Below are positions 6,101-49,540 of a stretch of 64,000 bases of DNA, piece after piece. Within the stretch, counting starts at the first letter, position 1. Each line of letters opens with the position of its first letter. The notes under the pieces were generated by a model. It did no database searches. It saw nothing but the letters and a program-made list of their open reading frames with translations, and had not been told where the DNA came from. A program made the translations under genes and the position numbers. The stretch is taken from assembly GCF_011386835.1 (NCBI RefSeq), contig NC_088811.1:12524001-12588000 (forward strand), given 5' to 3'. The stretch comes from Chrysemys picta bellii (Eukaryota).

Positions 6101-9100
6101 AGACTGGTTTCTGGTCTGCTTCTGCCACTGAGTTGCTGTGTTGGGGCAAGTCACTTAACCCTCTGCCTCAGGTTTCTGATCTGTACGAGAGATGGGCAAG
6201 CTTTTTCCCCATTGTGAAGTACGTTGAAATGCTTGCATGAACGGCACTCTGTGTGGGCCAAGCACTTCACAGCATCAGACAGTAACCTATTTTGGTGGTT
6301 CTGTTCCTCTGCCATTGTTACTTTTAAGTACGTCTGAGCAGTACCCATTGTAACAAGTTGTGTGAAATCTGTCACAGATACACTCCCTACCCCAACCTGT
6401 ACCCAGACCAGTCCCCCAGTGAAGAGTGGACCATGGAGGAACGCTTCCGACCTCTGACCTTCCACGGCTTGATATTGCGCTCGCAGCTGGTTACCCTGCT
6501 CGTCCGAGGAGTCTGTTACTCTGAGAGTCAGTCGGTGGGTCTTGCAGATTCTGGGGCAGATGAGGATTCTCTGTGGGAAGGGAGGAATTGGGAAGACGGC
6601 ATCCCCAGGGGCTGCCATGCAGTATTTTAAACTCCATCGTCCCCTTAGAAGCTGCAACGGGTAGAACAGTGAATCCTCCCTTTTGTCTGCGAAGTGAGAA
6701 CTACGCCTGTTATGTAACTGTGCAAGTGCAGGGAAAAGGCGCAGCTACCAAACAATAGCAGCTTCTCTATGAAAATGCCCAGTGTACTGCGTAGAGGTGA
6801 CATCCCCTCGTGGGAGAGGAGAAGGGGAGGGGAGAGGTCTGACTTCCCATAGTGCACCCATCAGCATGGTGTCATTGTCCCCCGTGTCTCTGCCTCTCAG
6901 TGGCTTGCTGGACAGATGTATCTCCGGGCGTGTAGCAAGTGAAATGATCCAGCCTGTTTGGTGCCCAAGTCCCGCAAAGTATCTCCATGGATTGGAGAGC
7001 AAATCAGTCCTTTCCGCTCCTCTCCTCTGCCAAAAGTGTGACTCCTTGTATTGGTTAAGTGTGTCCTGCTCCGTTGTGAATTATCTCCAAGCATCCCTCT
7101 CCAGACACGTGTGTAACTCCCTGAGCCTGTCGGGGGACCTGGAGGGTTGCTGAGAGCTCCAGTCTTGCCTGTGCTCTCGCATGGCTTCGGCCGCTTTAGG
7201 AATACCCTTTCGGAAGGGTGATGCTTCTCGTCAGCGAGGCTTTTTCATTGTCGAATTGCAGAGCACCAGCCAGCCTCGACTGTCGTATGCCGAGATGGCT
7301 GAGGATTACCCCCGTTACCCTGATATTCATGACCTGGACCTCACGCTGCTGACCCCACGCATGATAGTGGTAAGAGATGCTGATGGGAACCTGCTGCCCT
7401 GTCGTGGTGCCCTTTCTCCCTGATGCATGTTCTCAGGAATGCTCCAAAGACCTCTAAAAATGCTTCCCCGGCGGGTTACGGAGACACTTCATACCTAAAC
7501 TTACTCCCAAATTCCAATTCTGGTCTCCCCGGGCTGCTGCTTTAGGTTGAGCCCAGGTTCAAATCCACTCTGGGTGACAGTGACCAAAAATCCTGCACCT
7601 CTGACATCTTGGTCTGAAATACTTTTCTGACCACTTCCTAGCTGCCTGGATTTAACAAATCAATTGAATGTTAGTGGGAGAACAGCTCCTGTTCTCAGTA
7701 GACTTGACTCTTGGTTTAAGTGAATATGGATCTCACTTGTACCTGTTCAAAATCTCCCTGACATTGGATTGGGCCTGCAGGCCCAAGCAAGAGGCCCAAG
7801 ACTCATGGAGTCTACAGGCCTAAAGCCCCCTCTCATCCCCTCCCTTCCTGGAGAATGGAAATTCACTTTGAAACTACCTGGTAGAAATGACCTCTGTGTT
7901 TTCTTCTTGACTCTCCCCAGGACGTCACTCCTTACATGAACCCATCTCCCTTCACGGTCTCCCCTAACACTCATGCCTCGCAAGTCTTCAACCTCTTTAG
8001 GACAATGGGGCTCAGGCACTTACCAGTGGTGAATGCGGTGGGAGAGGTGAGTCCATACTGTGGCCGTGTCCTGGCTGAGGGGGGCGTTATGGGGCCTGCC
8101 CCATGCTACATTTCAGTCCCAGATTGCTGTTGAAGAAACCTGTTCTGACAGCGAGCAGAATGTGACTTTCAGAGGATGGAGAAACCTCTCTCCACTATAT
8201 GGTGCTAAGTTTCACCCAATTGTGTCTTAACTGACACCTGCTCACTTGAAAAATCTTTAACTGAGGCTGGTAATAAAGATGAAACCTTCACGTGTCCCAA
8301 GTCTGGATCCAGCCTAGGTTGGCCGTGACTGGAAGCTGATGCTGTCTGATGCCTGTTCAGGGGTCTTAGTCCACTTCCCAGTGGGCAAGGGTCCACTTGA
8401 CAAAAACCACCTCAAGTGGCACTAATTGCCCTCTGTTTTGGCAGCGTCTGCAGCCAAAGAAGACTGAAAGCCCCTGGGAGCAATCTCTCCAGGTTGGGGC
8501 ACATCCTTCTATTAGACAGGAATTTACATTGTATTTGTAAGAGCTGAGACAGTCAACTATAGAACCAATCCAGTTATCCAGACTTGTGGCATTTGCAGTG
8601 CCCAAAAGTGCCCATCAGGTGTCCTCAGCTTCCCATGAACGTAGTAAAGAGTCAGCATAAGAAAATCTGCAAAGCATACCAGGACTAACCGCAGGACATG
8701 TGCGGGCGGGGGTCTTGCTCGTGTATTGGGTGAGCTGTTGCACTGGTGGGTCTCTTGACAGGGTTTATCGTGACATGAAGCCAAGTTGCCCCAGAGATTG
8801 TACATGCCATCCTCTTATCGAACACCTAGAATTAGCTCTAGTGTATTTCAGAGACATAACTGATGTGGTAGGCAAGGATGAGGCTGCAGAAGCTTTCTCA
8901 GAGTGTCAGGGTTTCTGATGTTTGCCCCACTGAGCCTGCTAGTGGAAAGCAAACATTGCAAGCAAGAGCTATTGAGCGGTCACGCATTTTCTACTGTGGC
9001 CCTACAGAGTATACAGAAGGATCCTAGCACTGATCTTTACATGCATCCCCATTCTGCTGAACACCTTCTGGTGTTTCTGCCACTGTCCGCACTTCACAAG

Positions 9101-14904: not shown

Positions 14905-16784
14905 AATGGTCCAACAGCCATAGATCCAAGAACCTATATTTTCAAGGGAGGAAGCCATGAATGCTGTTTACTATAAGCTTTTTGGCCAGGGACCTTGACA
15001 GTTTGTATGGGAAGGCACACTACAACTTGGTCTCGCCCTACTGTTTCAGATAAACGGTCAGTCTAGGTCCATCTCCTCTGACAGGGGCCAGTTCCAGCTG
15101 CTTATGAGAAAGGAGGACACTTCCCCCTAGGCACCCTTTTGCTCCTCACCCTGCTGCCCCTCTTCCCCAGAGATCAGAATTTGGTTTGGGTAATTCTGGA
15201 AGTTCTAACTACCCATCCCAGTGTCTGATCCTTTCTGGAATCCTTGCCAAGTTCATGCCCAATATATTAATTTCAGCAGGACGATACCTCCATTCCGCCC
15301 CAATTCCATACTCGGTGACTTCATGGGAGAGCTTTGTCGGTGACTTCAGTGGCAACAGGATTGGTCCTACATGACTTATAGATGGTCCCTCCTGCAGTGC
15401 AGAGGATATTCTGCTCTCTTAGCTGGCCTCTCTCCCCCACCCCAGTAAGCTTATAAAAGGATCTAAGTATCCAGCTGTTTCCTTAGCGAAGGCAGGTTTG
15501 GGTATTGCTGGCACCCTGACGTCATCCTTAGTGCTTGTAGGGGGGCCTGGGGCTGGCTTTACTGTATCTCCTGTGCTACCATCTCTGTCCAATAGAAAAC
15601 ACGAGCTGAAACAAAACTCAGCCCTCGTCCCAGTAGTAGTTGCCGTAAGGCAGAGCTGCCTAAGGTGTGTCCTAAAATGTAATTCATGGAGGTGGCAGCG
15701 GCAAGTGCAGCCCCCCTCCCCCTCCTTTGCATGCGAGCTGTAGCATGACGATGGTAGTAATGGCCTCTAAGTTCTCCGCATCCTATGGGACGCTCTTGCT
15801 GTGCGTTGATGTATTTTAACCTTCGACTGTATGCGGACGCTGCCCTCTGCCTCCTGCTGAGTCACCAACCTACACTCTCCCCAGTGGGCGGGATGGAAAT
15901 TGGCACCAAGCATCATCTTTTGGCAGGGAGCCACTGCAGTGGTTGGGCCTGAGGGACTGACAGGGACACACCTGCCCTTCTTCTCCCCCCTCCTTCCCCC
16001 CCCACGGAGCGGGGAAGTTCAAAATTTGGTTGAGTAGCTGTGGACTAAAGAGCAGCTCCTGTGGTCCTGGTCTCTTGCGCTTCCATTCAGGAGCCGGGGA
16101 AGATGTGCTGGCTGGGAGGAAAACTCCTTTACTCAATCTGCACTTACTCCTCCTCGTTGTCACACATGCACTGGCATGGGGATGGAGGTGGGAATGGGAG
16201 CTGCCTCTTTCTCAATTTCTTTCTCCGATGTAATGTAAAAAAATGGGAAACGGTCTACTTCTCTGAAAAGGGAGCTAGGCCGCCCTGTGCTATGGTACAT
16301 CACTTGACAGCTCAGTGCATCTGCAGTTTAAAAACATCCCCAGCAGGCGTGAAACAGATGCCAGACACTTGGCTACAGCATTGTCAGCTTGGGGACTGGG
16401 CCGAGGTGTCAGGATTGTATGTAGGTGGGGGGGTTATTTTTTCATAGGACGGAAGCAGCAAGTGTCTTGCTTGGAGAAGAAAGGCGTAAGCTGGTTATAG
16501 ATAACTGTTTGGTTTGATACTCTGCACAGTTGAGTGAATACAGCAGCTATAATACCGTTACGCTTAAACCAGCCCCTGCCTGTACTCAGACTTAAATGGG
16601 GTTTATAGGCTCATTAATCCGAGCGCTTGTTAGGAGACCCACAATACCCTTCAATTGCTCATATTTAGGGGGTGCATTAGTGCAGGCCGGTGAGATTTTG
16701 TTGTGGGCCTCTTAACTGAATATGAGCTACATTTTTACACACACAGGCAGGTCATGCAGGGTATGGAAAAATTAACAGTAGCCT

Positions 16785-16803
16785 TTTATTGCACTCATTT
16801 ATT
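16785..16803 (-). terminator. ANP tandem polyadenylation signals
   Basis: Two AATAAA hexamers on the - strand. Confidence 0.7.
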
Positions 16804-16825
16804 TGATGAAAGAAACAGACCTGCA

Positions 16826-16846
16826 CTTTCTGTCCAAGGTGCTGAA
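16826..16846 (-). promoter_or_regulatory. RE1/NRSE (REST-binding) element in ANP 3'UTR
   Basis: TTCAGCACCTTGGACAGAAAG has perfect TCAGCACC-nn-GGACAG half-sites. Mammalian NPPA carries a known 3'UTR NRSE. Confidence 0.85.
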
Positions 16847-17140
16847 ATCTGGGCTGGAATTCTTTTCAGTGACAACGGACTAAAATTATCCTTTAACCCT
16901 TACGCTTCAGGGAGAAAGCCAACATCTTGTGCATTGTTTGACTCATGGTGCTGGGGGGCGGAGGGGGGAAATTGTTTGCAAATGGGTGAAGCCAGGTGGC
17001 AGCTAAGTTTCGCCTACTGTCCCTGCTGCAACATAAGTTACCAGCGAGGAGCTAAGAAGATGCAGTTGACTTTGGAAGAGGTTCGATGTCCAGGGATCTG
17101 AGGAAGAAGATCAGGATTGCCCCCATCTCCAGGTATAGCT

Positions 17141-17146
17141 TCAAAA
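17141..17146 (-). CDS. NPPA: ANP exon 3 coding part (F*)
   Basis: Strong acceptor ttgtctttttctctctccttcag|TTT TGA; downstream AATAAA at 16798-16803 and 16785-16790. Confidence 0.8.
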   Translation of the reverse strand, partial: F

Positions 17147-19683
17147 CTGAAGGAGAGAGAAAAAGACAAGTAAATGTAGGGGTGGTACATTTCTTTATTC
17201 TTTGGGGGGTTATTTGTGCTATCGGAGCATAACCTACTGGTGAGCGTGTTACAGATAGGGAACTTTAGCTCAAGTACATCAGCTTCTGCTTTCAGCTCTG
17301 AAGTTCCCTGATTCAATCACCAGTGTGTTGCTCAAACAGTGGTCATCACAATAGCACCTAAAGGTACGGAGAGCGGGATCCCGGTGCGCTAGGTACTATA
17401 AACACACACATGAGACTACAGTCAAGGCAGCTAGAGAGTGGGAGAATTATTATCCCTATTTAACAGAGCGGGAGTTGGGCTACAAAGAGATGAAGTCACT
17501 TGTCACACAGGAAGTCTGTGGCAGAGCCAGGATTTGATGCTAGATCTCCTGAATCCCACCACTCAACAATCCTTGCTCTTAAACACCAGCTGAATCAGAA
17601 CGAATGCAAGGCAGGGTTTTAAAGGGTGGATAAAGACAGGAGCAACTTAAGCAGCCATTGGTGCATCAGCAATCCCTTCCCATTGAGAAGCCCGGCAGCA
17701 TCCCTTTTTCCTTTTCCCTCCGGATCCCTTTCCCCCATCCTCCAGCTGGGCTGCTGCGGTGTTAAATGTTTGGGCCCCTCTGTCCTGAACTCATCACAAA
17801 AGAGGATGGAAGCTGGTTCCTTTTTAGTAGCTCATTTAAGCTTCGAGAGGAGCCTTCCCACGGTTTGTGACTAGCTGGGATCGTAAAGTGGTGGGAAGGT
17901 AACACGTCGTACTGTGTGCCGCACGTGATCCTGAACAATGCCAGAGCGTGGCTACTTGAGTAGAATAGCTAGCGCCCGGCTAAGACAGGAGTAAGATGTG
18001 GTGGTGAAGGCATAAATGTTTAAATCCTTGAATCACACAAAGAGCAATGAGGCACTGGAATGGTTTAGAGTGGTTCACCGGGGGCTAACCTTTCATCATT
18101 ACAAAGTGTTATCGGGTGAGATCAGGACCTTGAAGAGGCGAGTTAGCTACTGTGATGACTGTGCAGTCAGTGTAGACAAGGACAATTGTGTTCAGTGCCA
18201 TGCTGGGACTTGGGTGTAACCAGGACTAGCTAACATGATGCTGTACAGGATTTGCCCTGGTCTATGCTGACTGCAAAGTTGTCCGCCTCGTGCTGGTTGA
18301 TCCTTTGAGGCTGGGATCTAACCTAGTAAATTTTGCATTGAGGACGTGCCCCGTGAACGATGTGCTGAAATGAAGAAAAGGCAGCATTTGAGTCTGAATA
18401 GTGAGGGAAACTTACTGGCCCTGATACCTTTTAAATAGCAGACGAGTCTCCCGTGGGAAGAAGAGGTAGAAACTCCCTCAGGTTGGATTGTAAAAACTCG
18501 ACTGAGCAGAATGCTCGATGTTGAAGGGGGACAATGCTGTACTGACCCCCAGGAGATGGGCTCTGATTTCTATGGTCCTTACGGTGGAAGATTCCATTGC
18601 TCTGGAATCAAATGCATCCTTCTTGAAAGGATTTTATCTAGGGTGGTTCTTGTGGCTGGTGTCTGAGTGCACCATTCCACCCGGGTTACGTGTTCTCACT
18701 GCAGCACTTTATGTTAAATTAGGGAACTGACTGCTAGGGACTCAGCCAGAAAAGGACGCAGTCTTCATTATCGTTTCTAAAAATTGAAATTTCCTAAGAG
18801 TTCAGAAAAGACATGTAAGAGAGAGGCTCACTGAAGCTAGAGCCCCCAACCCATTTTAAGTCCCACTGTTTTTTAAATTATCCACCTGGACGCTGCAGCA
18901 CAAGAACAAGAGAGTTGGCGTAGGAGACTCCTCAAAATCCATCATCCATCTTTTAACCTGAACTAGACAGTCCACCTTGACTTCCTGGGAACTCTGCCCA
19001 GACCGTAACATTGCTTCATCCTTACTCTATTGCCCCAGCTGTGCTTGAGTCATCTAGCCATTCCCTCTCCCTCTTACCCGGTAGCTGTTGCATCCAAGTC
19101 CGCTCTGGGCTCCTATTCTATCTATCCGTTGGCCAAAGCAATCCGAGAACCTTCTCATGCTGCGTGGCGAGTTCAGCAGTGCTCGTAGCTTGCTCCTCAG
19201 GGCAGACGGAGGTTTCTCAGGCAGCTCCCAGCTGTTGCGCCCATGGGCCAGGCCTTCTCTTTGCGGTCTAACGTAGTTGCTGTTCCTTGGACCAAGGGGG
19301 CGTGAGGCATCTCCTGGGGCTTCCTCATCCTGTTCCTTCATTTCTTGGGACAGACCTGCCTCGGCTTCTTCTGATGGGAGCTTGTCCTCCAGGCGGTCCA
19401 GCAGGGTCTGAAATGCAGAGAGGCAGCGGGGGAGAGAGCGTTTAACCCTAGAATCGCCCTAGGGGACGGAGTGAGTGGCAAAGCAGTGCACACCTTCCCC
19501 GCTCCCCCAGCCCTTGGTTGCATTGCGTTCTGACAGTGATGCCTGCCACCCTACCTTGAAGTCCGCCAGTTCCGCAGCGGAGGCCGAGCTGTACGCGGGA
19601 TGAGCGTTGGCTCCTCCTTGGGGCTTCATGCTGAACATCAGCAGCAGCGAGAACCGCAGGGCAGCAGCAGTCAACGAGCCCAT
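17141..19683 (-). CDS. NPPA: Atrial natriuretic peptide precursor (154 aa)
   Basis: complement(join(17141-17146,19078-19407,19555-19683)). Signal peptide [17 protein letters not shown]; pro-region ...[14 protein letters not shown]; mature [29 protein letters not shown] with a 17-aa ring. Phase-0 introns, a 1-codon last exon and adjacency to CLCN6, all as in mammalian NPPA. Confidence 0.93.
17444..17556 (-). mobile_element. MIR/CORE-SINE in ANP intron 2
   Basis: attattatccctatttaacag...gaagtcacttgtc...ggcagagccagga. Confidence 0.55.
19078..19407 (-). CDS. NPPA: ANP exon 2 (TLLDRLEDK...GCNSYR)
   Basis: catttcag acceptor; CGG|GTAAGA donor; 110 codons. Confidence 0.95.
19555..19683 (-). CDS. 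NPPA: ANP exon 1 (MGSLT...ELADFK)
   Basis: ATG at 19683; AAG|GTAGG donor. Confidence 0.9.
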
Positions 19684-19759
19684 GCCGTAGTCCAAGTTCT
19701 CCTCTCGCCTCCAGTGGTTTGCCCCCTCTCGCTGATGGGCTGCGAGCTTGACCCCTCCC

Positions 19760-28272: not shown

Positions 28273-28465
28273 GGGGGGGAGGGATAGCTCAATGGTTTGA
28301 GCATTGGCCTGCTAAACCCAGGGTTGTGAGTTCAATCCTTGAGGGGGCCACTTGGGGATCTGGGGCAAAATCACTACTTGGTCCTGCTAGTGAAGGCAGG
28401 GGGCTGGACTCAATGACCTTTCAAGGTCCCTTCCAGTTCTAGGAGATGGGATATCTCCATTTATT
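28273..28465 (+). mobile_element. Tortoise Pol III/SINE
   Basis: Same head and tail as the 26279 copy. Confidence 0.9.
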
Positions 28466-28719
28466 AAATATTAAAAAGGCCACACTTGGGCTGTGAATCT
28501 AAAAGCAGCTGATAATGGATTTCTCCCTCGGTGCTTCGATCCTTAATTTGGTCTGCGCAGTTAAACACAAGCAATTAGCCATCCTCCACCACCCCTAAGT
28601 ATTTTACAAACTGACTCCTAGTGATAGAAAGTCTCTGTCCCATCTCTCCCAGGCATACTGCCTTTGAGTCAGTAAACTGTGAGATCCTGCCTCACCTATG
28701 GCAGTGCACCTAATAAAAT

Positions 28720-29230: not shown

Positions 29231-32200
29231 CTGCAAACAAGTCATGAAATAAGAGTTATGGCAGGAAAATGGGGAGACCTTGAATGCACTTTGCTCTGTC
29301 TTTCAGTGCTTGCCATCCTCATCCTAGGTCTGTGCTTTGAAAATCAAATCCCCAAGCTGCGTCCTTTAGTAAAACACAGAAGGTGGTTTTGTTGGGTGAC
29401 CTTTGGCAAACCACTTTGCCTTGTTGTACCTCAGTTTTCCCATGGGAATAGAATGAGACTTTACACTCTGTTATAAAGCACATTAAGATCTATGGATGAA
29501 AATCACTATACAAGAGCTGTTAAATCCTGGGTTAATATAAATTGTCGGGGGGTTAAAGAAAGATGCTTCTCTATGTGACGGTGTCAGAAATCACTCCTAG
29601 GGCTGCTTTTAAAGGACAGTGTCAGTTTAAAAATTATAACTAGGCTTGGCAGGATTCGATTTTTATCGGTAAATGTCAGTAGATGTCAATTTCACCATAC
29701 ACCCAATGGGTTACTTGTGAAACAAACAAAAAATATTGCCAGGGATTAATCATTGAAATTTACAGCTAAGCGAAGTAAGCTGCTGCTTGAACTTAGTAGA
29801 GTTTGATGTAAGGATATTTACTTGATATGTTTTGACATGTGACGTTGACCGCTTGTGTTCCTGACTCTTACAAAGCTTTAACTTTTGAATCTCCGTGTCT
29901 GCTGTCATAACTAATTCTGTTAATTTCCTGTTAATTTCCTGCCACTGAAAATTTAAAGGATAAAACTGCTTAAAAATAAACATCTATATATTTGTTAGAA
30001 TATCAAATTCTGCCAAGCCTAATTATAATAAACTTGCAAAAAAATTATTGTGTTACTAAGAACCACTGTAGATTATTAAAATATGGGCTAGATCCTCAGC
30101 TGGTGTTAATCAGCGTGGCTCTGAGTCAATGAAGCCAGTTTACACCAGCTGAAGATCTGGCTTTGAAAACTGTAAAAATCCTAGGCCATGTGCGCACCAG
30201 GAGCGCCTCGTCTGTATAGGATACTGGTATTTTCCTGTACCAGTAAAGTGCTGGGCTTTTGCAGGCCTAATTTATTCCAACCCGTTCCCCCTCTCTGTCC
30301 TGAGCCATAAAAGCACAGCTTCAGTGAGAGAACTGCATCTGTACCCGTGGCTTTTTCTGGCACAGCCCAGTTGGTCACAAATCACAGCTCATCCCGCCCC
30401 GAGCGACACAGCCATGCCGGCAGAAGTCTGTGGTGTGGCCATCGCCTAAATTACTTCTCCCCATTTCTGCGGTTGGGTTTACACTTTGTACTTCACTCAG
30501 ATCGGTCAATGAAAACAGACCAGTCAGTCTAATTTTCTCAGGTTCTCGTGCCCTAGCCTAATGCTGCAACGATTGGTTTGCAATCACCATTGGCGGGGGT
30601 GGGGAAGTGGTTAAATCCAAATCAAACACTATTTATACTGAGATTTTTCTAAATCTAAACAAATGTCACTAAAACGCTTTTGTTTTAAATGTTTTCCTTT
30701 TTTAAAAGCAAAAGCCAAATTACAGGCCTACACTAACGTGCATCATTTCTTTAAAAGCAAGATGTCTTTGGTAGCAGAAGCATCTCTCTATCCAGGTTTT
30801 TATGCTGTGCCTATCACCGTGGTATCCAAGCACCTTGCCATGTCCCTACGCTATTAATATCACTATTTAAATAAATTTATATAGTGGCACTAATTTGCAT
30901 GATGATGATGTGCAAAAATAGGCTTAGATCCTGCATGTGGCCCCTTGTGCCCATGCAGCTCCCAGCCGAATAGATCCAATGGCAAGATCAGAGCCATAGA
31001 CAAGAAGGTCCTCACTGCATCGAGTCTCAATAAAGGAAGATAAGCTTTGGACAGGACACAGGCCGCCAGTTCAGGAGAAGGATGAGGTGGGTTTCAAGGC
31101 TGGATTTGGAGAAGGGAGCCTGGTTCAAGGGGGCTGTTCTAGACATAGGGGTAGTTGATAAAAGGCCCGAAGATAAGAGCAGGGAAAGGACGGGAAGAGA
31201 GGCTAAGGCAAAAGGGGTGAGATGTGTAATGAGCAGGAAGGAGAGGAGTGGGAATGTGAGCAGATGACGGTGGTTTGACAGGACAGGGATGTCCATCGGG
31301 TTGTCTCTAGGCTGTAAGGTCCATACAGAGATCATCCTTTTGTTCTGAGTTTGCACAGCGCCTAACACAATGGGGTGCTGGTCCATGACTAGGCTTCCTA
31401 GGAGCTACAGTAACCCACATAAATAATCATCCATTTATAATGAGTTGGGTTAGGAGGGACTCACCATTGCAGCCCATTCCGCTCAGAGAGCCGATCCTGT
31501 CAATTCTTCTCCCAAAGCAGCCTGAGTCTCTCATCATCTTGGGAGCTTGCAGCCCCCTCAGTCGCTTGAGGATGGGGTCCCTATAGGACAGAGGGGCGCT
31601 GGGGGCTGGCCTGGGTTCGGGCTCCTGGTCACTGCTGTCATCAAAGAGTTCTGGTGGAGTCTCTTGCTGAGCTTCGGGCTCCTGAAGATCAGGGTTGGAC
31701 TCCAGGGCTTCCATCAGTGAGAACTTGTCCTCCAGCCTCTCCAACAGAGCCTGCGAGAGAAGGGCACAGACTGAAACACTCATCCCTGTGATTTCCCCCT
31801 TGCCTTCCTACCCGCTCAACCTTTGCCTAACCACTGAAAATAGCAGTCGTCCTATTGCCACCGGGCCTGGGGAGACTGTGTGCAGGCTGGGCTGTAGGGT
31901 CACCTCCCCTCTGTCTTCTTTGTCCCACCCAGACCCTACAGTCTTGTTACTCTGCCCCTGTGTGAGCACATACCCGGGGGGTTCGGCAGGGTTGTGCTTG
32001 GGTGGCTAGCCTGAGCCCCCCCACCTCCCCACCACAGCCACACTGCTATTTGTAGTGTCCTGGCTTGAGTAGAGCTAGCACATCTCTGTCTACCCGCACT
32101 GAGAAGCACCCTCCCAGGTGCTGTGTACACATCCCCTAAGATGGAAGGGGTGGTTCACTGCCTCAATGTCCTTTTGGGTCCATCTCTGCTCCAGGTTCTT

Positions 32201-33707
32201 AGCTAGCAGCAATGGCCTGCAGTGCTCCTCTGTACCTGGCCAAAAAGCTGCCAGCTTTCCCCTTCTTTTGCAGACCTCGGAAGGGGTCACCTGCATCTGT
32301 CCCCCGCCAGGCTGTTGCGAGAGGCTTTACAGAGAGAAACTCTTGATCTCGCCCAGAAGCTGCCCTTGGTGTGGAACAGTGTTGCTATCCCCACAGTCGC
32401 GTGGGGTGCACACATCTAGAAAGCCTGCACACCAGTCTTTGCCCTGGCTTCCTGCTCACTTCTGAGGATCACTCATCACTCAAGATGAGTTTTAAAGCCC
32501 TGAATAACGTGGAATCGGGTCTCACTTCCAGAGCAGCTCAAAACAGCTCAGAGCCTCTTGCTGTCCCTTCCTAGGTTTCAACCCCCTCCAGTGAGCAGCT
32601 ACCTTCTGGGGGGTGCTGCCTGTGGGATCCTCTCCTCTGGGCACTTTGCAAGAGCCAGAACCTAGCTACGAGGCTCCATGCAAAATTTAACAGTTTGGCT
32701 TAACTTTTGCCTGTTTTATTCTGGGGGGTTGTTCTAATACTTTTAGGGAGCTTGTTCTTTAAGGGCTTGGTCCTATACAGGGCTGCTCACGCCGGTCCCA
32801 ATCCAGCAAAGCACTTAAGCAGATGTTTAACTTAAAGCAAATATATAATCCTATTGAAGTCACTGGGCTCCTTCATCATGCACGACGGAACCTGAATGTT
32901 GGTTGCTATGGCAATGGACACCATAAATCCCACAGGTGCATAATCATTTCCCAGCTCTGGGGGCTTTTCTGAGGGAGTCCAGCTTTGTGATCAAACCATT
33001 CATTTTTTTAAAAAGTAATGAATGAATCTTCTAAAAGTTCACACCCATCTGCCCCAATCCCCTGCTCATCTCCTGCCCACACAAACCCTGGGTCTTTCCT
33101 CGTGTTTCCCAAATGTGAATGCACACACTGTCTTCTGCTTCGGTGCACCTGTACCTTAGTGAGAGAAATCGTATGAGGGACCTCATCTCAAAAAACCCAT
33201 TGTCTCCTCTTCTAAAGCTACACTGATCCTTTTATAATTCCTTCTAGAGGAATGTCCCTAAGTTCTATTAGCGCCTTAAGGAAAGACGGTTTCTGTATTG
33301 AAGAGGCAGATGTTCCACAGCCTCGGGACCCTCTTCATCCCTGCTACCACCAAGGATCATCGGATGAACCCGCTAGCTGACAGGATCAGTCCCTCGAGGG
33401 TTCTGGGTTCTCTGACGCGAGAGCCCCATCTTAAAATGGTTTGGAGCTGACAGTGCAGTTGGCTGGGTCACCTTGTCCCCTGTGGGTCTCTGCTAGCTAC
33501 ATTACTGCACTAGAGAAAGGTGTTGGCACCACACCGTGCTCGGCGGAGCCCTGGAGAGTCTAACAACACAAAGCAAAGAGTCCTCACCTCCATGCTGGCC
33601 AGTTCTTTGGCAGGGCTGAGGCCGTAGATGGGGTTGGTTCTGCTGGACTGGAACTGAATGAGCAGCAGCAACAGGATCCCGCAGGAAAATGAACCTTTAG
33701 TGTCCAT
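29214..33707 (-). CDS. NPPB: B-type natriuretic peptide precursor (140 aa)
   Basis: complement(join(29214-29230,31465-31750,33588-33707)). Mature [29 protein letters not shown], one residue from the recalled chicken 29-aa cardiac peptide (BNP). ATTTA-rich 3'UTR and an MCAT/GATA promoter typical of BNP. Confidence 0.9.
29345..29515 (+). mobile_element. MIR/CORE-SINE in BNP intron 2
   Basis: gtgacctttggcaaaccact...cctcagttttcccatggg. Confidence 0.6.
29641..30021. mobile_element. hAT non-autonomous element in BNP intron 2
   Basis: TIR TAGGCTTGGCAG / CTGCCAAGCCTA; 8-bp TSD attataac/attataat. Confidence 0.85.
30085..30160. repeat. Ancient hairpin mini-element (similar copies at about 20176, 27985, 42675, 47080, 58885)
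   Basis: agatcctcagctggtgt...acaccagctgaagatct imperfect palindrome. Confidence 0.65.
31465..31750 (-). CDS. NPPB: BNP exon 2 (ALLERLEDK...GMGCN)
   Basis: ctcgcag acceptor; G|GTGAGT donor (phase 1). Confidence 0.95.
33588..33707 (-). CDS. NPPB: BNP exon 1 (MDTKG...ELASME)
   Basis: Hydrophobic signal ILLLLLIQF; GAG|GTGAGG donor. Confidence 0.9.
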
Positions 33708-35467: not shown

Positions 35468-35667
35468 ACCCCTCTACCCCGATTATAACGCTGTCCTTGG
35501 GAGCCAAAAAATCTTACCACGTTATAGGTGAAACCGTGTTATATTGAACTTGCTTTGATCCACCGGAGTGCGCAGCCTCCATCCTCCCCCCGCCCCCCCC
35601 GGAGCGCTGCTTTACCATGTTATATCCGAATTCATGTTATATCAGGTCACATTATGTAGGGGTAGTG

Positions 35668-35670
<3 letters not shown>
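35468..35670. mobile_element. Tc1/mariner(pogo)-like MITE embedded in microsatellites
   Basis: Ends cc(c)ctctaccccg / ggggtagtggtg; repeated ttataac/gttata motifs. Confidence 0.6.
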
Positions 35671-35704
<34 letters not shown>

Positions 35705-36261
35705 TATATATATAATGTGTGTGTATAAAATTATATATATAACTTCATTAAGGTTACAGAGCCAAGCCCTCAAAAATTAGGAAATGCCAGAATTAAGGGT
35801 GACTTGGTGACTGTGCACCTTTAAATCAGCCCCCTTGTGCTGTGCTTTATGATCGTAGGTGAGGGGGTTATTAAAGACTATCTTCCCCTCCACGAAACCT
35901 CTCCCTCATTCTGTCCACAGGATGAAGGGTGCTCTCTTAATGAGCAGCCATTCATTAGGTTTTTTTTTTCTCCTCATTCTTCAGTGTGTGGCCCTGGGCC
36001 TTATTTGCTGCACACAGTTCAAACCCTGCTCTGAAGAATTATTAATGCCCTTGTGGGCTTTTCTGTGACACTCATCACTATGGTATCTGAGTGCGTCACA
36101 AATGCTAATGCATTTATTTTCACAGCACCCTTGTGAGTTGAAGGGGTGTCATTCCTGGTTTACAGATGGGAGAGCTGAGACAGAGATTAAGGTCCAAAGT
36201 ATCCACTAATTTTGGGTGCCCAATTTGAGATGCCTAGGACCCAATTCTCTTATTTAATACA

Positions 36262-37093
36262 TAAGCCCCTTTGTTTTCAGTTTAAACCATTTTTTACTGA
36301 AAAATTCTCCGGTTTTACAAAAAGCATTATTCAGTTTTTTCCAATTTTCACCCTACTTTTGTATCATTCAAATGTATAAAAATAACTTGTTTTATTAGGA
36401 AAATACAATACATTGCATGGGATCTATGTATTACGATAATACATTAGTCTGTGTGTATGCAAAGCTGCCTGTTGAAGTAAGGCTGTGTATTAGTCTCTAG
36501 AAGATACACACAATAAACAAACAGGCCCGCACACAAGCTCTGAAGTGCGTGCACATCTGAACGTCCTGATGAATCTCACATACACATTTCAAGCTGCTAG
36601 CAGATAACCACTTAAAGATTTGACAGTAAAATGGGAAGAAAACAATCTATCAGAATACACTTCAGAACTTAAGGAAGTATTCAAAAGTTTTAAAAAAACA
36701 AAAACAGGAGAAAAGGACAGAGTTATGTGCTACACATGGTGTGGCCTAGTTATTAAATGTAAATACGGCGAATAGTTCTAAGTCTTCAACAGTAAACTGT
36801 TTATTCAAACAAAAAGTTTTATTTGGAGATGAGAGATTATTTTCTTAAACTCAGAGGTGGCCTTGTGTTCTGAGTTCTGTTTTAATTCTGCAGCAAACCA
36901 CATTGATGAATGGAATTCAAAGTATTACTTTACTGAATATTCCCCCTCCCCCCCCAATCTTTTTGTCCACCAAAATAAACCCTGATATTTACCCAGAAAA
37001 AATGTTTGCACTGATTTTTCACCTGTTTTTGTTCTGGTGATGATAAACACTGACATTCCCAGGAAAAATAAAAACTGAAAACGAAGGGCCCTA
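36262..37093. mobile_element. hAT non-autonomous element (832 bp)
   Basis: TIR TAAGCCCCTTTGTTTTCAGTTT vs TAGGGCCCTTCGTTTTCAGTTT (19/22); perfect 8-bp TSD ttaataca. Confidence 0.85.
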
Positions 37094-37449
37094 TTAATAC
37101 ACCATTCTATGGCACATCCTATATTCCTAGCTCAGCTCCCACTGACTTCAGGAGCAGCTGTGCAACTGACCCCAGGTCCCAAGATGGGCACCCAGAAAAT
37201 GAGAAGCATGCCACTAGTGACTACCTGTGAAAAGTGTGATTAAATTCCTTTCCCAACATGGCATAGGAAATCGGAGGCAGGGACAGAAGCCAGTTCTCCA
37301 GGGCAGCATTCAACTACCTTATCCATACCGCCCCCCCGCCCCCTCTTCCTGCAATCCCCTCCCTCCTTTAGGACCCAACTTGGGCAGCCAAAGAAACACT
37401 TCTGACTAGGGCTGGACTTGGCAGCTTTATTGGTGTTCTTTTAAGGTAG

Positions 37450-38450
37450 TTAGTTTTGTGTCTGTAATGGGGGTGGGGGGGCCTGTGTGGGAATGAGTGG
37501 GCATGAGAATTCCTGGCTGCAGCTGTAGCTTTGGATGTATAGGGCCCTATTCTGCCTTCCCTCGCCCCCTGGTGGCCCCACTGAAGCTAAAGGGCTGTAA
37601 GGGAGCCGCCCCCACCCCCACCCTCCAGCCAGGCAGGCCGGACGCAGCAGGGCGCTGGCAGGAGCCTCCGCTCCTTGTTCCCCATCGCTGGGACACCGCC
37701 CCTGGGTGCTCCCCCACCCCCATCTCTCGGGCCCGATTCCTGCTCCCCACCCGGCCCGTGACACCATCTTTCCCCACCCTGCAGCCGGCTCAGCCCGGCC
37801 TCTGTGCTCCCTGCCCCAGCGCCCCGCATCCCCTGCGAGGGACAGAGCAGCTGGGGTCGGGGGGGGGGATCTCTCTTCATCCCCAGCAGGGAGCCGCTTC
37901 CTCCCCGGGGGCGCCTGGTGCGTGCCCCCCACCCTGCGACGAGTCAGCTGCCCCGCCCCAAGCTCTGAGCCCCTCCAAGCCCAGAGCTGGGGGGCCTGGC
38001 TCTGCTGGACGGCCCCTGGCCCAGCCGTAGGCTTGGGTGTGTCTGTCCGTCCCTCCCTCCAACCCAGGCTGGCGGGGGCGGAGAAAAGGCTCCCTCGGGG
38101 TGAACCCGCCCCTCTCCCTGCCCGGCCCCGGGGGATGCACCTGGCTGGATCCCCCAGCTGACAGCCCAGACTGGGCGAAGGATGGTGCCGCTAGAGCCGG
38201 CCGAGGGGGCCCCCTAGCGGATGCCGCGAAGCGCGCACGCTGGCGGCTGTCCAAGGTGCTGAACAGGGCCAGTCCTGAGCCAACGCATGGTCCAGGTGTT
38301 TCCACCCAGCCTCGCACAGGTCCCTCCATCTCCCTCGGGTCTCTAGCGCCTAGTGCCAGCAGGTGGTCCTCCCTCTCGCTGCTGAGGGTCATGCAGCCAG
38401 CGCCCCGAAAGGGCTGGGCTGTTAAGGTGTGGGTGGCCCTGTGCCCTGGG
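37450..38450. promoter_or_regulatory. CpG-rich island 3' of the RNP-like gene
   Basis: Visibly high GC and retained CpG relative to flanks (not computed). Confidence 0.6.
38243..38263 (-). promoter_or_regulatory. RE1/NRSE element in CpG island between the RNP-like gene and BNP
   Basis: TTCAGCACCTTGGACAGCCGC; 17-bp core identical to the ANP 3'UTR site. Confidence 0.85.
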
Positions 38451-39084
38451 AACCGGGCCTGGTGTATGCTGGGCCAGGCTGTGCTGACACTCCACAGCGA
38501 TGCTGAGCGAGCATTTCAACCCAGAGCCCGCCACCGTCCGGTGCCCCGAGGAGCCCAATCTACTCCGCCATGGGGCAATCTAGGGGGGCTTTACCAATGA
38601 GAGAGAAGAGTTTCCCCCCCCCTCAAAAGCACCACTTGCACTGGGGTAAAGCCGGAGTGACTTCATCACCTCTGGGGGGAGCCACTCCCCATTGACCCCA
38701 GTGGAAAATGAGAGCAGAATTGGACCCTCGCGTGGGATGACTTCCTCCAAGTAACCCAGCCCAGTTGTGCAAGTGATGCGTGAGCTTTGCGGGGGCACTT
38801 CGCGTGGGTCAGGAAACTGGTCCCAGGTCCCCAATGCCCCGTCAGAAAGGACTCGCTCCTCGCGGGCCTCCAGAATGAAATGAGCGGTTTATACAAAATA
38901 TTTATTGATACACGCCACGGCTGTCAATTAACCATATATACAACGCGAATTCATCCACCAGCCAAGCCCTGTTCAGGCGTGACACATGTTCCGCTCGGGA
39001 GGGGTCGAGGGCTTCCCACCACGTTACCAGTCCACACAAAAGAGGCTCAAAAATGTCGTGGGAGGCTGGTGGGAAGTTCTAGAT

Positions 39085-39113
39085 TCAGCTTCTCGATCTC
39101 CTCTTCCAGGAAC
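39085..39113 (-). CDS. RNP-like exon 3 coding part (RSWKRRSRS*)
   Basis: tctctttccccccttggttctag acceptor; TGA at 39085-87. Confidence 0.8.
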
Positions 39114-40076
39114 CTAGAACCAAGGGGGGAAAGAGACACAATGAGCACCACGTTCAGACTCTCCGCTTCTCTTCTAGGCTAGAGCAGCTCCTGTCACCAC
39201 GCGGCTGGACAGCTGTCTGCTTGGCCTACGGGTAATATAAGGGAGCTGTAGGGCCCCACTGTTCAACCCTTTCCAACCGGAGCCAAGGCCTGCCCCCCAC
39301 CCCCACCCCCAGACAGGGGATGGGGAAGAATCTTGCAGAGTTGGGTCGGGCCATTGCCAGCCATGCCTCCTAAGGCTGGTGCTGTCTCCTGGCGAGGTGG
39401 GGAAGAGCTCTAGACACGCCGGGGCCGAAGGCAGGCTAAGGGTCTAGCTAAGACCTACGGGCTTTGAAGATGTTGCACCCAAGTCCTGTCTGAGAGCCGA
39501 TCCTCTCGATCCTGGTCCCAAAACACCCAGAGAAGTGTCTCATCCTCCGGGGAGAAGCAAGGAGGTTCCTCCACCGACTCTCCACGGGATCCCGGGGCTG
39601 GAGCTGGGTAGCGGGGCTGCTGTCCGGCTCAGCAAGGTCCCAGCTAGGGTCGTCCTCTTCCGCCCCGTAGTCCAGGCTCTCCAGCTCCAGCGGCTCCCCT
39701 TCCTCCCCCTGAATTTTCTCCTTCAGCAGCTCAAGGAGGTCCTAGAACAAGAGAAGAGAAGACCGTGATCAGCTCCCGCGTAACTGACCAGGGCATCCAG
39801 TCCCTGGGGCGGGGCAGAGGGGGCCACAAACCGGACCTGTCCTCTCTCGGATTGAAAATCACACTGCTCGGAAGGGGGCTCTGCCCCCTTGGCCTGCTTG
39901 TTACGGTGCCTAGTGCTAACACCAGCTCCCCACCCCACCCCTGTACCGCCTCTCCTCACCTGCAGGGACTGGAGCTCCTGGCTGGTGTATTTCCTGGACA
40001 GCGGGTGCCCGCCTGCTGGCCCCCACAGGCTGAGGAGCAGCAGAGCGGCCCAAGAGCACAGGGCTGCGCCTTTCAT
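39085..40076 (-). CDS. RNP/VNP-like natriuretic peptide precursor (142 aa) with long basic C-terminal tail
   Basis: complement(join(39085-39113,39459-39741,39960-40076)). Signal [23 protein letters not shown]; ...[51 protein letters not shown] at 40147-53; AATAAA at 38901-06. Confidence 0.88.
39459..39741 (-). CDS. RNP-like exon 2 (DLLELLKEK...GCNIFKA)
   Basis: ttctcttgttctag acceptor; C|GTAGGT donor (phase 1); hand-translated 94 codons + 1 nt. Confidence 0.92.
39960..40076 (-). CDS. RNP-like exon 1 (MKGAAL...ELQSLQ)
   Basis: ATG at 40076; CAG|GTGAGG donor. Confidence 0.9.
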
Positions 40077-41017
40077 CCTGCCCGGTTCTTGCTCTGCCTC
40101 CAGACCGGAGCTCCTGGGGGTGGGCGTGAACGGCTGCTCCGGCTTCCTTTATAGCCGCCCTTCGCCTCCGGGCGGCTTCCTGCCCGAGCTCGGAATCCGG
40201 GCACTCGGCCCTGATAAAGGAACTGGTTGCAGCCAGTGGCACTCGAGGTTACCCTTTCGGAAGCGGTGTGTCCCCCGCCTGGAGTAGCGGTCGGGAGCCT
40301 GGTCCACTCCAGCAGAGCCCAGCCGCCCTGGGGGATCAGGGCATTTCAAGTGCCTCCTTCGCGGTCCCTCTCTGGGCAGCGCAAGGGAGGCAATGACCGC
40401 GTGGTCTCCCACGTTCCCAGCAGTCGCCATTTGGCTAGCGCTTGATGGATCGCCTGGGATCCCTTCAGTGCCTTGGGCACGTCCTCCTGACCCATGGGAA
40501 ATGATCCATTGCTCACCCGCCGTGAAGGGAGATCAACCCCCCTTCTTGGGCCAGTCTGCAGCCTCCTGTAGCTGGGGGAGGGGAGCAAGGGGGTGCAGAG
40601 CGGGTTTGGAACCGGTGTCTCTGCTCCGCTTGCAGCAGTTCACACCGGCAGCGTTTGTGTCTCTTTCAGTTTGAGCTTTAAAATGAAATGGGAAAACAGA
40701 CACGTGTTAGGGAAATCTCACTGCCAAGGCCTCTCCCACCCCGGCAGACCCTGTGCCACTGACCAGCTCTGCCATGTTCCACTCTGGTCTGGGGGCCATC
40801 GGGGTTAGTTACTTGGCGACTAGAGGTGACCGCCAGTGGTGGCATTAGTTACCAGCTTGTATTACTTTTCCCCATTGGACATACTGTGCTGCCCTGCTTG
40901 GCCACTTGCAAGAGCATCGCCACCGTTCTGTGGGCAGGGATGCTCCCTATTACGTGCCACCCATGGGTGTCTGTGTAACAATCTTTCCATCACGCTATTT
41001 TCAAAGGACTTCAGCTT

Positions 41018-41259
41018 TGTCTGCACTGGGAATTTCCCTGACCTCAGCCACAGATGACCAGCAACTGGGGCAGCTCCCTTCATGTAGACAAGCATCGCAG
41101 TGATTTTACACCCCCGGAGTTTACTCCTGCTTGGAAGTGGGGTAAGTTGCACTGGTCCAGATCACAGCTCCTTGACCATGCCTAGATTTTGCGTTGGGGC
41201 AACTACACCATTTGCTGGTCATCTGTGGCTGAGATCAGGGCAAATTCCCAGTGCAGACA
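41018..41259. mobile_element. MITE with about 60-bp terminal inverted repeats (Harbinger-like ends)
   Basis: tgtctgcactgggaattt..cagccacagatgaccagca at 41018-78, mirrored at 41196-259. Confidence 0.7.
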
Positions 41260-42156
41260 GGGACTCAGTTGCACTTCTCTTTTCTGTGCATTTTTTTTAG
41301 TGCATCCAACGCCAGACTTTTTGGTGCCGTGGGAACTGATTGAGCCCTGGGTTTTGGTAGGACATCCTTTATTTTTCTTCCTCCACATTAAAACGCTGCT
41401 TTCTCCAAGACTGCAGAGGATGGCGTAAACCTCCCTATGACGTTGTGTGCCAGGCAGCTAATCTCCGTTTAAGATGTACCAGAATTTCATTGGACTATGT
41501 TTGCTGTCAAGTGCCAGCACTGCCAGTTTATCCCCTTGTCGTAAAACAGCTACTTACTCCCCAGTGGCTTTCGACAAACTAGCCATCATGTGTAAGGTGA
41601 CGTGTGCAGGCCGGTCACCCCTCGCTCGCCATGTCTCGTCCTTCTGCCTGTAAATGATGGGGCGCTGTGTCCTCCTCACCCCACACACTTGTATTCTAAT
41701 GCGAGAAATTCCTAAGCAACAATCATCCTTCATGGAAAGTCCAGCTGTTATGCTCAGAGGAAGAGGTCACCTTATTAATCATTCATTTTAGACTCCCTAG
41801 ACAACAGCACTTGTATCATTGAACTGGTTACTGTAATGGATGGCCCGCCTTTCTGCAAGGTCCTCACGGATTGTTTTGCCTTGGGCGTTGCTACTGTTTC
41901 TTATTAGCCTTAGCCAAACAAGTCCTTCTACAAATGACCAAAACCAAGTGTCAAAGGGGATAATTTCTTTGGTACTGAGGCAAATCTCCATCCTCTGAAG
42001 CATCAGGGATGGCCAAGGCTGGAGATAGGATGTTGGCTGGGGAGGCACCAGGGCTCTGAGGTGGTGCGAAGAAGGCTGTAATACTTTGGTCTAATTTCCA
42101 TGGTTGGGTTTAATATGAAGGTGGTGGTCTGTGATCTACAGAAGGTCAGCCTGGAT

Positions 42157-49027: not shown

Positions 49028-49349
49028 CTGCCGAGGAAACAAAAGGAATACGTGACAGAAAGGAGGTCCGCCAGGTTTCACTAACAGGAACTAATTGACT
49101 TCACTATTCTAGGGCTCGGTTCTGCTCGCTTACCCTGCTCCATGGGGCTTCTCTGGACTTACACCAGCGTCATTGGGGAGCTGGTAAAAGCCTCTCTTGG
49201 CTGGTTTCTCTGAGGCATCTTTGGAGAAGACAGGGGAGGGGTGGGTAAAGCCCTGGAGGTGTAAGATTAATAAACCAAATGTGCAGGTGATGCTGGGGAC
49301 GTCTGTGGAGTTGCACCAACATGAAGTTGGTCCCTTGGGTCTGAGAGGA

Positions 49350-49540
49350 GGGAGGGATAGCTCAGTGGCTGCTAAACCCAGGGTTGTGAGTTCAATCCTT
49401 GAGGGGGCCACTTAGAGATGTGGGGCAAAATCAGTACTTGGCCCTGCTAGTGAAGGCAGGGGCTAGACTTAATGACTTTTCAAGGTCCCTTCCAGTTCTA
49501 GGAGATAGGATATCTCCATTAATTAATTAATTTATTTTTT
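49350..49540 (+). mobile_element. Tortoise Pol III/SINE with internal deletion, in the CNP3 3'UTR intron
   Basis: gggatagctcagtgg^ctgctaaaccc... Confidence 0.88.

Follow-up and report, generated by a model that had tools for sequence, protein, structure and literature searches.

A conserved RE1/NRSE between the RNP and BNP genes of sauropsids as a probable REST target

Does the control by REST that is known for two cardiac hormone genes of mammals extend to other natriuretic-peptide genes and, where an RE1/NRSE stands between two of them, which gene would it serve and where did it come from? REST control of ANP and BNP is central to the switch of the 'fetal gene programme' in failing mammalian hearts. 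In mammals, REST/NRSF binds an RE1 in the 3'UTR of NPPA and another in the 5' flank of NPPB and represses both genes, and loss of this repression re-activates them in hypertrophy (PMC9405064). The NPPA 3'UTR NRSE/RE1 was described by Kuwahara et al. 2001 and the 5'-flanking NRSE of NPPB, the 'fibronectin-inducible element', by Ogawa et al. 2002 (both as reviewed in PMC9405064); REST ChIP-seq and EMSA evidence exists for the NPPA site (PMC3320604). REST repression of NPPA through a 3'UTR NRSE and of NPPB through an upstream NRSE, from which the original prediction for this locus started, is established in mammals (PMC9405064, PMC3320604). These two sites are textbook knowledge; what is new here is a conserved RE1 behind the sauropsid gene RNP. 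Our literature search found no paper that pairs an NRSE with renal natriuretic peptide and no description of such a conserved element.

The window, a stretch of 64,000 nucleotides from the painted turtle, contains the natriuretic-peptide cluster CNP3-RNP-BNP-ANP, four genes which are all encoded on the minus strand and were identified by their ring motifs (Table 1). ANP exon 2 showed 100% identity with a Chrysemys picta bellii protein. The acceptor of ANP exon 3 lies directly before TTT TGA (Phe, stop) at 17146-41, and the end of this exon (~16770) is an estimate from the two AATAAA signals at 16803-16798 and 16790-16785.

Table 1. Positions of natriuretic-peptide gene features and RE1/NRSE copies in the window.
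Feature	Position	Strand	Remarks
CNP3 ring	49739-49689	-	
RNP exon 1	39960..40113	-	ATG 40076; contig starts 40108-40113
RNP exon 2	39459..39740	-	prohormone and 17-residue ring; donor C/GTAGGT at 39459/39458
RNP-like ring	39525-39475	-	
RNP exon 3, short form	38888..39113	-	tail SWKRRSRS; TGA 39087-85; AATAAA 38906-01; polyA site 38888
RNP exon 3, 3' extension	37737..38887	-	RNA contigs; contains RE1
RE1/NRSE 21-mer TTCAGCACCTTGGACAGCCGC	38243..38263	-	RNP-BNP spacer; motif and conservation in 7 other sauropsids
BNP exon 1, coding part	33588..33707	-	ATG at 33707; next gene downstream of RNP-side RE1
BNP exon 2	31466..31747	-	carries 17-residue ring
BNP ring	31519-31469	-	
ANP exons 1-2	19078..19683	-	ATG 19683
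ANP ring	19140-19090	-	
ANP exon 3	16770..17146	-	TTT TGA, 3'UTR with RE1, two AATAAA; end estimated
RE1/NRSE 21-mer TTCAGCACCTTGGACAGAAAG	16826..16846	-	ANP 3'UTR; counterparts in skink and platypus ANP 3'UTR

Two copies of an RE1/NRSE had been predicted from their identical 17-bp core on the same strand. An exact-match search for this 17-mer, TTCAGCACCTTGGACAG, agreed with the prediction: its only two occurrences in the window are 16830-16846 and 38247-38263, in each case on the minus strand and without mismatch. The degenerate 17-bp NRSE consensus NTYAGMRCCNNRGMSAG (PMC4430910), which we searched as an IUPAC string rather than by a matrix score and from base 2 on (leading N ignored), matched the same two positions with 0 mismatches and had no other match in the window. 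By chance, 0.03 matches are expected in 64 kb, and 0 of 100 dinucleotide-preserving shuffles reached two. The canonical 21-bp form of the motif consists of the half-sites TCAGCACC and GGACAG, separated by a 2-nt linker, and a C at position 21. To this form the RNP-side copy (TTCAGCACC-TT-GGACAG-CCGC) conforms at 16 of 16 specified positions and the ANP copy, which ends in G, at 15 of 16.

Both copies are also located downstream of a natriuretic-peptide stop codon, as had been stated. The ANP RE1 starts 295 nt after the stop, with the two AATAAA signals beginning 43 and 56 nt past the first base of the site. The RNP-side RE1 follows the true RNP stop by 822 bp and the main polyA site (38888) by 625 bp; the BNP ATG (33707) is reached after another 4.54 kb, so that the predicted 4.4 kb was about right. 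Consensus match and gene anatomy together agree with an RE1/NRSE of canonical form that is positioned 3' of RNP and 5' of BNP.

For the anatomy of RNP, assembled contigs from four public runs were mapped to positions 35600-41500, and gene models were searched exon by exon. On the minus strand, the contigs are spliced at two GT..AG joints, which connect 39959 with 39740 and 39457/59 with 39111/13, demonstrating that the runs contain RNA and that RNP consists of three exons, as ANP does. The stop from which the site had originally been placed, an in-frame codon after the ring (39448-50), is intronic; the true stop is the TGA at 39087-85, and the site is still downstream of it. One contig ends at the main polyA site with 19 T, 13 nt past the AATAAA, and three contigs from two studies extend beyond this point. 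The first joins all three RNP exons (40108-39959, 39740-39457 and 39111-37737), the second runs from the exon-3 boundary at 39113 to 38070, and the third covers 39045-36973. The RNP-side RE1 is thus inside contigs that are continuous with spliced RNP exons, in sense orientation, whereby the strand of the long form is deduced from this continuity and the contigs themselves carry neither strand nor abundance. The parallel between RNP and ANP is closer than the original prediction could know, because RNP has a short exon 3 and its site is part of a long 3' form. In kiwi and tinamou, a second AATAAA is found 59 bp before the RE1 (loci ~11428 and ~11238) within a block conserved in three birds, with a degenerate form in the woodpecker; in birds, RNP may accordingly have a distal polyA site directly at the RE1.

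The RNP-side copy had further been placed in a CpG island. Within 100 bp on either side of the RE1, the GC content is 0.68 and the CpG o/e ratio 0.64, and windows of 200 bp covering the site pass lenient criteria (GC ≥ 0.5, o/e ≥ 0.6, ≥ 200 bp). However, the o/e ratio is 0.46-0.56 for flanks between ±150 and ±500 bp, and the strict Takai-Jones criteria (GC ≥ 0.55, o/e ≥ 0.65, ≥ 500 bp) fail at the site, so that the setting is at most a borderline case of a CpG island. A motif resembling the CTCF core, CCGCTAGGGGGC, starts some 46 bp 3' of the RE1 (38201-38217, minus strand). It is common to Chrysemys, Chelonia and Gopherus and absent from Emydura and birds; we dropped it as evidence, since it deviates from the 15-bp CTCF consensus at more than one position.

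Comparison with other species was based on exon 2 of the individual genes. With RNP exon 2 as query we recovered orthologues in turtles and birds, with BNP exon 2 crocodilian, squamate, amphibian and mammalian BNPs, and with ANP exon 2 the ANPs of turtles, tuatara, mammals and frogs, to which a full-library search added fish VNPs. Twelve loci were fetched with 10-kb flanks. Exactly one RE1-like 21-mer per 20-kb locus, on the gene strand, was found in the turtles Chelonia, Gopherus and Emydura (a pleurodire) and in the birds Apteryx (kiwi), Eudromia (tinamou) and Dryobates (woodpecker). A lack of conservation in other turtles or archosaurs had been named among the outcomes that would refute the prediction, but the element is present at the corresponding place and in unchanged orientation in all of these species and also in the skink Tiliqua. 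There, the RE1 follows the end of the RNP coding region by 0.87 kb and precedes BNP by 2.04 kb, and the only other RE1 is in the 3'UTR of an ANP-like gene. Measured from the RNP ring, the distance is 0.84-1.3 kb in turtles and birds and 2.0 kb in the skink with its longer gene; measured from the RNP coding end, it is about 0.75-0.9 kb in all seven other sauropsid loci. The spacing from a conserved polyA-signal block to the RE1 amounts to 0.48-0.64 kb in all sauropsid loci compared, and the distance from the RE1 to BNP, 4.54 kb in Chrysemys, is 2.0-4.1 kb in skink, tinamou and kiwi. The gharial locus yielded no RNP ring and no RE1, which is not evidence of loss, because the interval collinear with positions 41829-37831 of the window is collapsed onto an N-run there (locus 6175-6905) and thus coincides with an assembly gap.

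When the sequences of the eight sauropsids were anchored at the site, 16 of the 21 RE1 positions proved invariant, whereas of the ungapped flank columns only 3 of 60 did. Variation within the RE1 is confined to positions 6, 10, 11, 18 and 19. Position 6 is C in turtles and G in birds and skink, and the latter variant, TTCAGGACC, falls outside the strict consensus (M = A or C). Positions 10-11 form the linker, which reads TT in Chrysemys, Emydura and Tiliqua, CT in Chelonia and TC in Gopherus. Linker and last four positions of the RE1 are poorly conserved (PMC4430910), and four of the five variable positions, namely the 2-nt linker and positions 18-19, belong to this part of the motif. From RNP exon 3 to BNP, only three stretches can be aligned between turtle and skink, first the polyA-signal block, then the RE1 and last the BNP promoter. 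At the sequence level, this pattern is the signature of a protein-binding DNA site that would have been under purifying selection since turtles, birds and lizards diverged. Kept in place in turtles, birds and a lizard, the RNP-side 21-mer is very probably functional.

These data bear on two simpler readings of the element. That it is a chance match in GC-rich DNA has the GC-rich setting in its favour and nothing else; with two matches against 0.03 expected and the same place occupied in eight species, we regard coincidence as negligibly probable. The other reading is that the conserved block works at the RNA level, as a protein- or microRNA-binding 3'UTR element of the long RNP transcript. Assembled transcripts do traverse the RE1, but the block lies beyond the main, conserved polyA site, its invariant and free positions follow the bipartite REST motif, and the same motif at NPPA is a proven DNA site (PMC3320604), all of which renders an RNA-level role very unlikely.

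Outside the sauropsids, strong RE1s were detected in the clusters of frog and eel and before NPPB of the hippopotamus, at differing positions. The spacer from CNP3 to BNP of the frog Spea bombifrons holds two RE1s that match the consensus perfectly, at locus positions 3549-3569 (-) and 6157-6177 (+). The inverted one lies 0.62 kb behind CNP3 and has the same 17-mer as the turtle sites, the sense one is found 3.84 kb before BNP, and tblastn with RNP and VNP proteins detected no RNP gene or relic in this spacer. In the eel, the cluster CNP3-VNP-BNP-ANP spans 10 kb and contains a single RE1, CTCAGCACCTTGGAGAGCGAC, at locus position 14940-14960, which follows BNP by 0.68 kb and precedes ANP by 1.9 kb. 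Allowing up to 2 mismatches, we found no credible RE1 in the 3' regions of eel VNP and ANP, in the 3' region of Spea ANP or in the BNP promoters. The eel also has no RE1 between VNP and BNP. In the hippopotamus, NPPB is preceded by the sense RE1 ATCAGAACCACGGACAGCGGT, 645 bp before the ATG and the sole consensus-perfect RE1 in the preceding 10 kb; the locus as fetched ends short of where an ANP 3'UTR site would lie. The platypus ANP carries a sense RE1 240 bp past its stop. Every tetrapod locus examined, with the gharial unscorable, has one sense RE1 before BNP; its distance is 0.65 kb in the hippopotamus and between 2.0 and 4.5 kb in sauropsids.

How does the RNP-side element compare with the established mammalian sites? 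Like the NPPA 3'UTR NRSE, it is a canonical bipartite RE1 in sense orientation past the stop of a three-exon cardiac natriuretic-peptide gene. In contrast to the NPPA NRSE, it is located 0.6 kb past the main polyA site, is transcribed only in the long form and belongs to a gene that is absent from mammals. The direct counterpart of the mammalian NPPA 3'UTR NRSE is the ANP copy of the window (16826-46), and the same holds for the sites in platypus and skink. With the NPPB 5'-flank NRSE, the RNP-side RE1 shares the sense orientation and the status of the sole strong RE1 upstream of BNP. It differs in its distance to BNP (2.0-4.5 kb compared to about 0.6 kb), in the conserved non-coding blocks that separate it from BNP and in its position directly behind another expressed gene. 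The proximal, NPPB-type position, about 0.5-0.65 kb before BNP, is not occupied by an RE1 in the window, skink, tinamou or kiwi.

A further reference is the genome-wide RE1 catalogue of Xenopus tropicalis (PMC4430910). The RNP-side RE1 fits its 17-bp consensus, and the 17-mer is among its most frequent variants: the exact sequence accounts for 69 of the 718 rows starting with TTCAGCACC (PMC4430910). Neither the text nor the supplementary tables examined hold an entry for nppa or nppb, the only natriuretic entry being the receptor gene npr3, and the two RE1s between CNP3 and BNP of Spea are not described there. The catalogue also places the 17-mer TTCAGCACCTTGGACAG at a distance of 37 kb from npr3, which encodes the natriuretic-peptide clearance receptor (PMC4430910, supplementary table 1).

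The best explanation of these findings, which we consider likely, is that 38243-38263 represents a genuine, selected site for the zinc-finger repressor REST/NRSF that would silence RNP, BNP or both. REST occupancy, repression and the target gene are what we infer for the RNP-side RE1 from the mammalian genes. By analogy with NPPA and NPPB, REST bound to this element would be predicted to recruit the co-repressors mSin3/HDAC and CoREST/LSD1 and would silence RNP, BNP or both where and when cardiac hormone genes should be off; cardiac stress would relieve the repression. The sense RE1 before BNP in a frog that has no RNP favours at least a role for BNP. Some observations fit this explanation less well. 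Since the main polyA site precedes the RE1 by 0.6 kb, the term 'NPPA-like 3'UTR element' is only approximately true, the distance of the RE1 to BNP is 2-4.5 kb in contrast to about 0.6 kb in mammals, and the G at position 6 of the bird and skink copies is outside the strict consensus.

As for the ancestry of the element, the original prediction was that the site had duplicated with the gene, i.e. the RNP and ANP sites would be paralogous, the 3' RE1 of an ancestral gene unit having been copied by tandem duplication. The two genes resemble each other in having three exons with a tiny coding part in exon 3, and both sites are in sense orientation downstream of the stop. A TT linker is found in the RNP site of three species (Chrysemys, Emydura, Tiliqua) and recurs at ANP in two of them, Chrysemys and Tiliqua. 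Furthermore, for every paralogue there is at least one vertebrate lineage with a strong RE1 0.3-0.9 kb past the end of the coding region, namely the frog for CNP3 (in inverted orientation), the sauropsids for RNP, the eel for BNP and the amniotes for ANP. On the other hand, a blastn comparison (word size 7) of the flanks of the RNP and ANP copies matched only the ring-coding region and the bare 17-mer. The identity of the two 17-mers is expected from motif constraint, because this 17-mer is among the commonest RE1 variants. Already within the turtles the linker varies, being CT in Chelonia and TC in Gopherus, and frog ANP as well as eel VNP and ANP are without a 3' RE1. On balance, we consider a joint duplication of site and gene, with paralogy of the two sites, unlikely.

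The second proposal concerned mammals, where the upstream NRSE of NPPB could be the RNP-side element that was left behind after the loss of RNP, which implies orthology of the site across tetrapods. Orientation and interval are consistent with this idea: the hippopotamus NPPB RE1 is on the sense strand and the only consensus-perfect one in the preceding 10 kb, the 3' site of sauropsid RNP is likewise the sole RE1 before BNP, at a variable 2.0-4.5 kb, and Spea, which lacks RNP, retains a sense RE1 3.84 kb before BNP. However, the flanks of the mammalian and sauropsid sites do not align. When the RNP-BNP spacers of turtle, skink and kiwi were compared with the region upstream of hippopotamus NPPB and with the spacer between CNP3 and BNP of the frog, nothing but microsatellites and BNP exon 1 could be aligned. 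This says little, since the BNP promoter also fails to align between turtle and hippopotamus. Other points against the proposal are that tblastn with RNP and VNP proteins found no RNP relic before the hippopotamus NRSE, that the distance to BNP differs several-fold, that positions 1 and 6 and the linker differ, and that the eel is without an RE1 between VNP and BNP. In addition, many NRSE sites differ between frog and human (PMC4430910), which makes an independent gain within a REST-controlled cluster plausible. Altogether, the origin of the NPPB NRSE as an orphaned RNP element is a serious possibility that falls not far short of probable.

Alternatively, the cluster may long have been under REST control while individual RE1s were gained and lost, so that the sites of ANP, RNP/BNP, frog, eel and mammals would in part be independent acquisitions. 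The positions indeed differ, with one site behind BNP in the eel, two between CNP3 and BNP in the frog (one of them inverted) and none at its ANP, and again other arrangements in sauropsids and mammals; moreover, flank homology is absent between any two classes of sites. Against this stands that the sauropsid site has stayed in place ever since turtles, birds and lizards separated and that the ANP 3'UTR site is common to turtle, skink and platypus, which means that turnover must be slow in these lineages. We regard such a history as possible, if clearly short of probable. Rather improbable, in our estimation, is the most far-reaching version, in which an ancestral module of a gene and its 3' REST silencer spread by tandem duplication, leaving the NPPB NRSE and the sense RE1 of the frog as orphans of VNP/RNP. 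If it were true, each spacer RE1 would be the 3' silencer of one gene and the 5' silencer of the next.

Independent of its ultimate origin, the RNP-side element adds a third hormone gene, RNP, to those now seen to adjoin a REST-type site, and its distribution suggests that REST wiring of the cluster was already in place when turtles, birds and lizards last shared an ancestor. This wiring is probably older still, because strong sites are also present in the frog and eel clusters. For the chicken, with its tractable embryos and cell lines, the element provides a 21-bp target for asking if a single RE1 can keep both of its neighbour genes silent. How the NPPB silencer arose, in turn, changes from a speculative story into something that can be answered by sampling genomes more densely.

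Two minor observations concern other parts of the cluster. A 197-bp stretch at 28274-28470 and 49347-49529, 86% identical and on the same strand, lies behind BNP and CNP3, respectively, and is probably an interspersed repeat. In Tiliqua, a third natriuretic-peptide gene (147 aa) was called at locus position 17471-19740, downstream of BNP in the position of ANP and with an RE1 in its 3' region, and the tuatara has an annotated ANP. An older claim holds that ANP was lost in diapsid reptiles; if so, this loss would apply only to birds and perhaps crocodilians.
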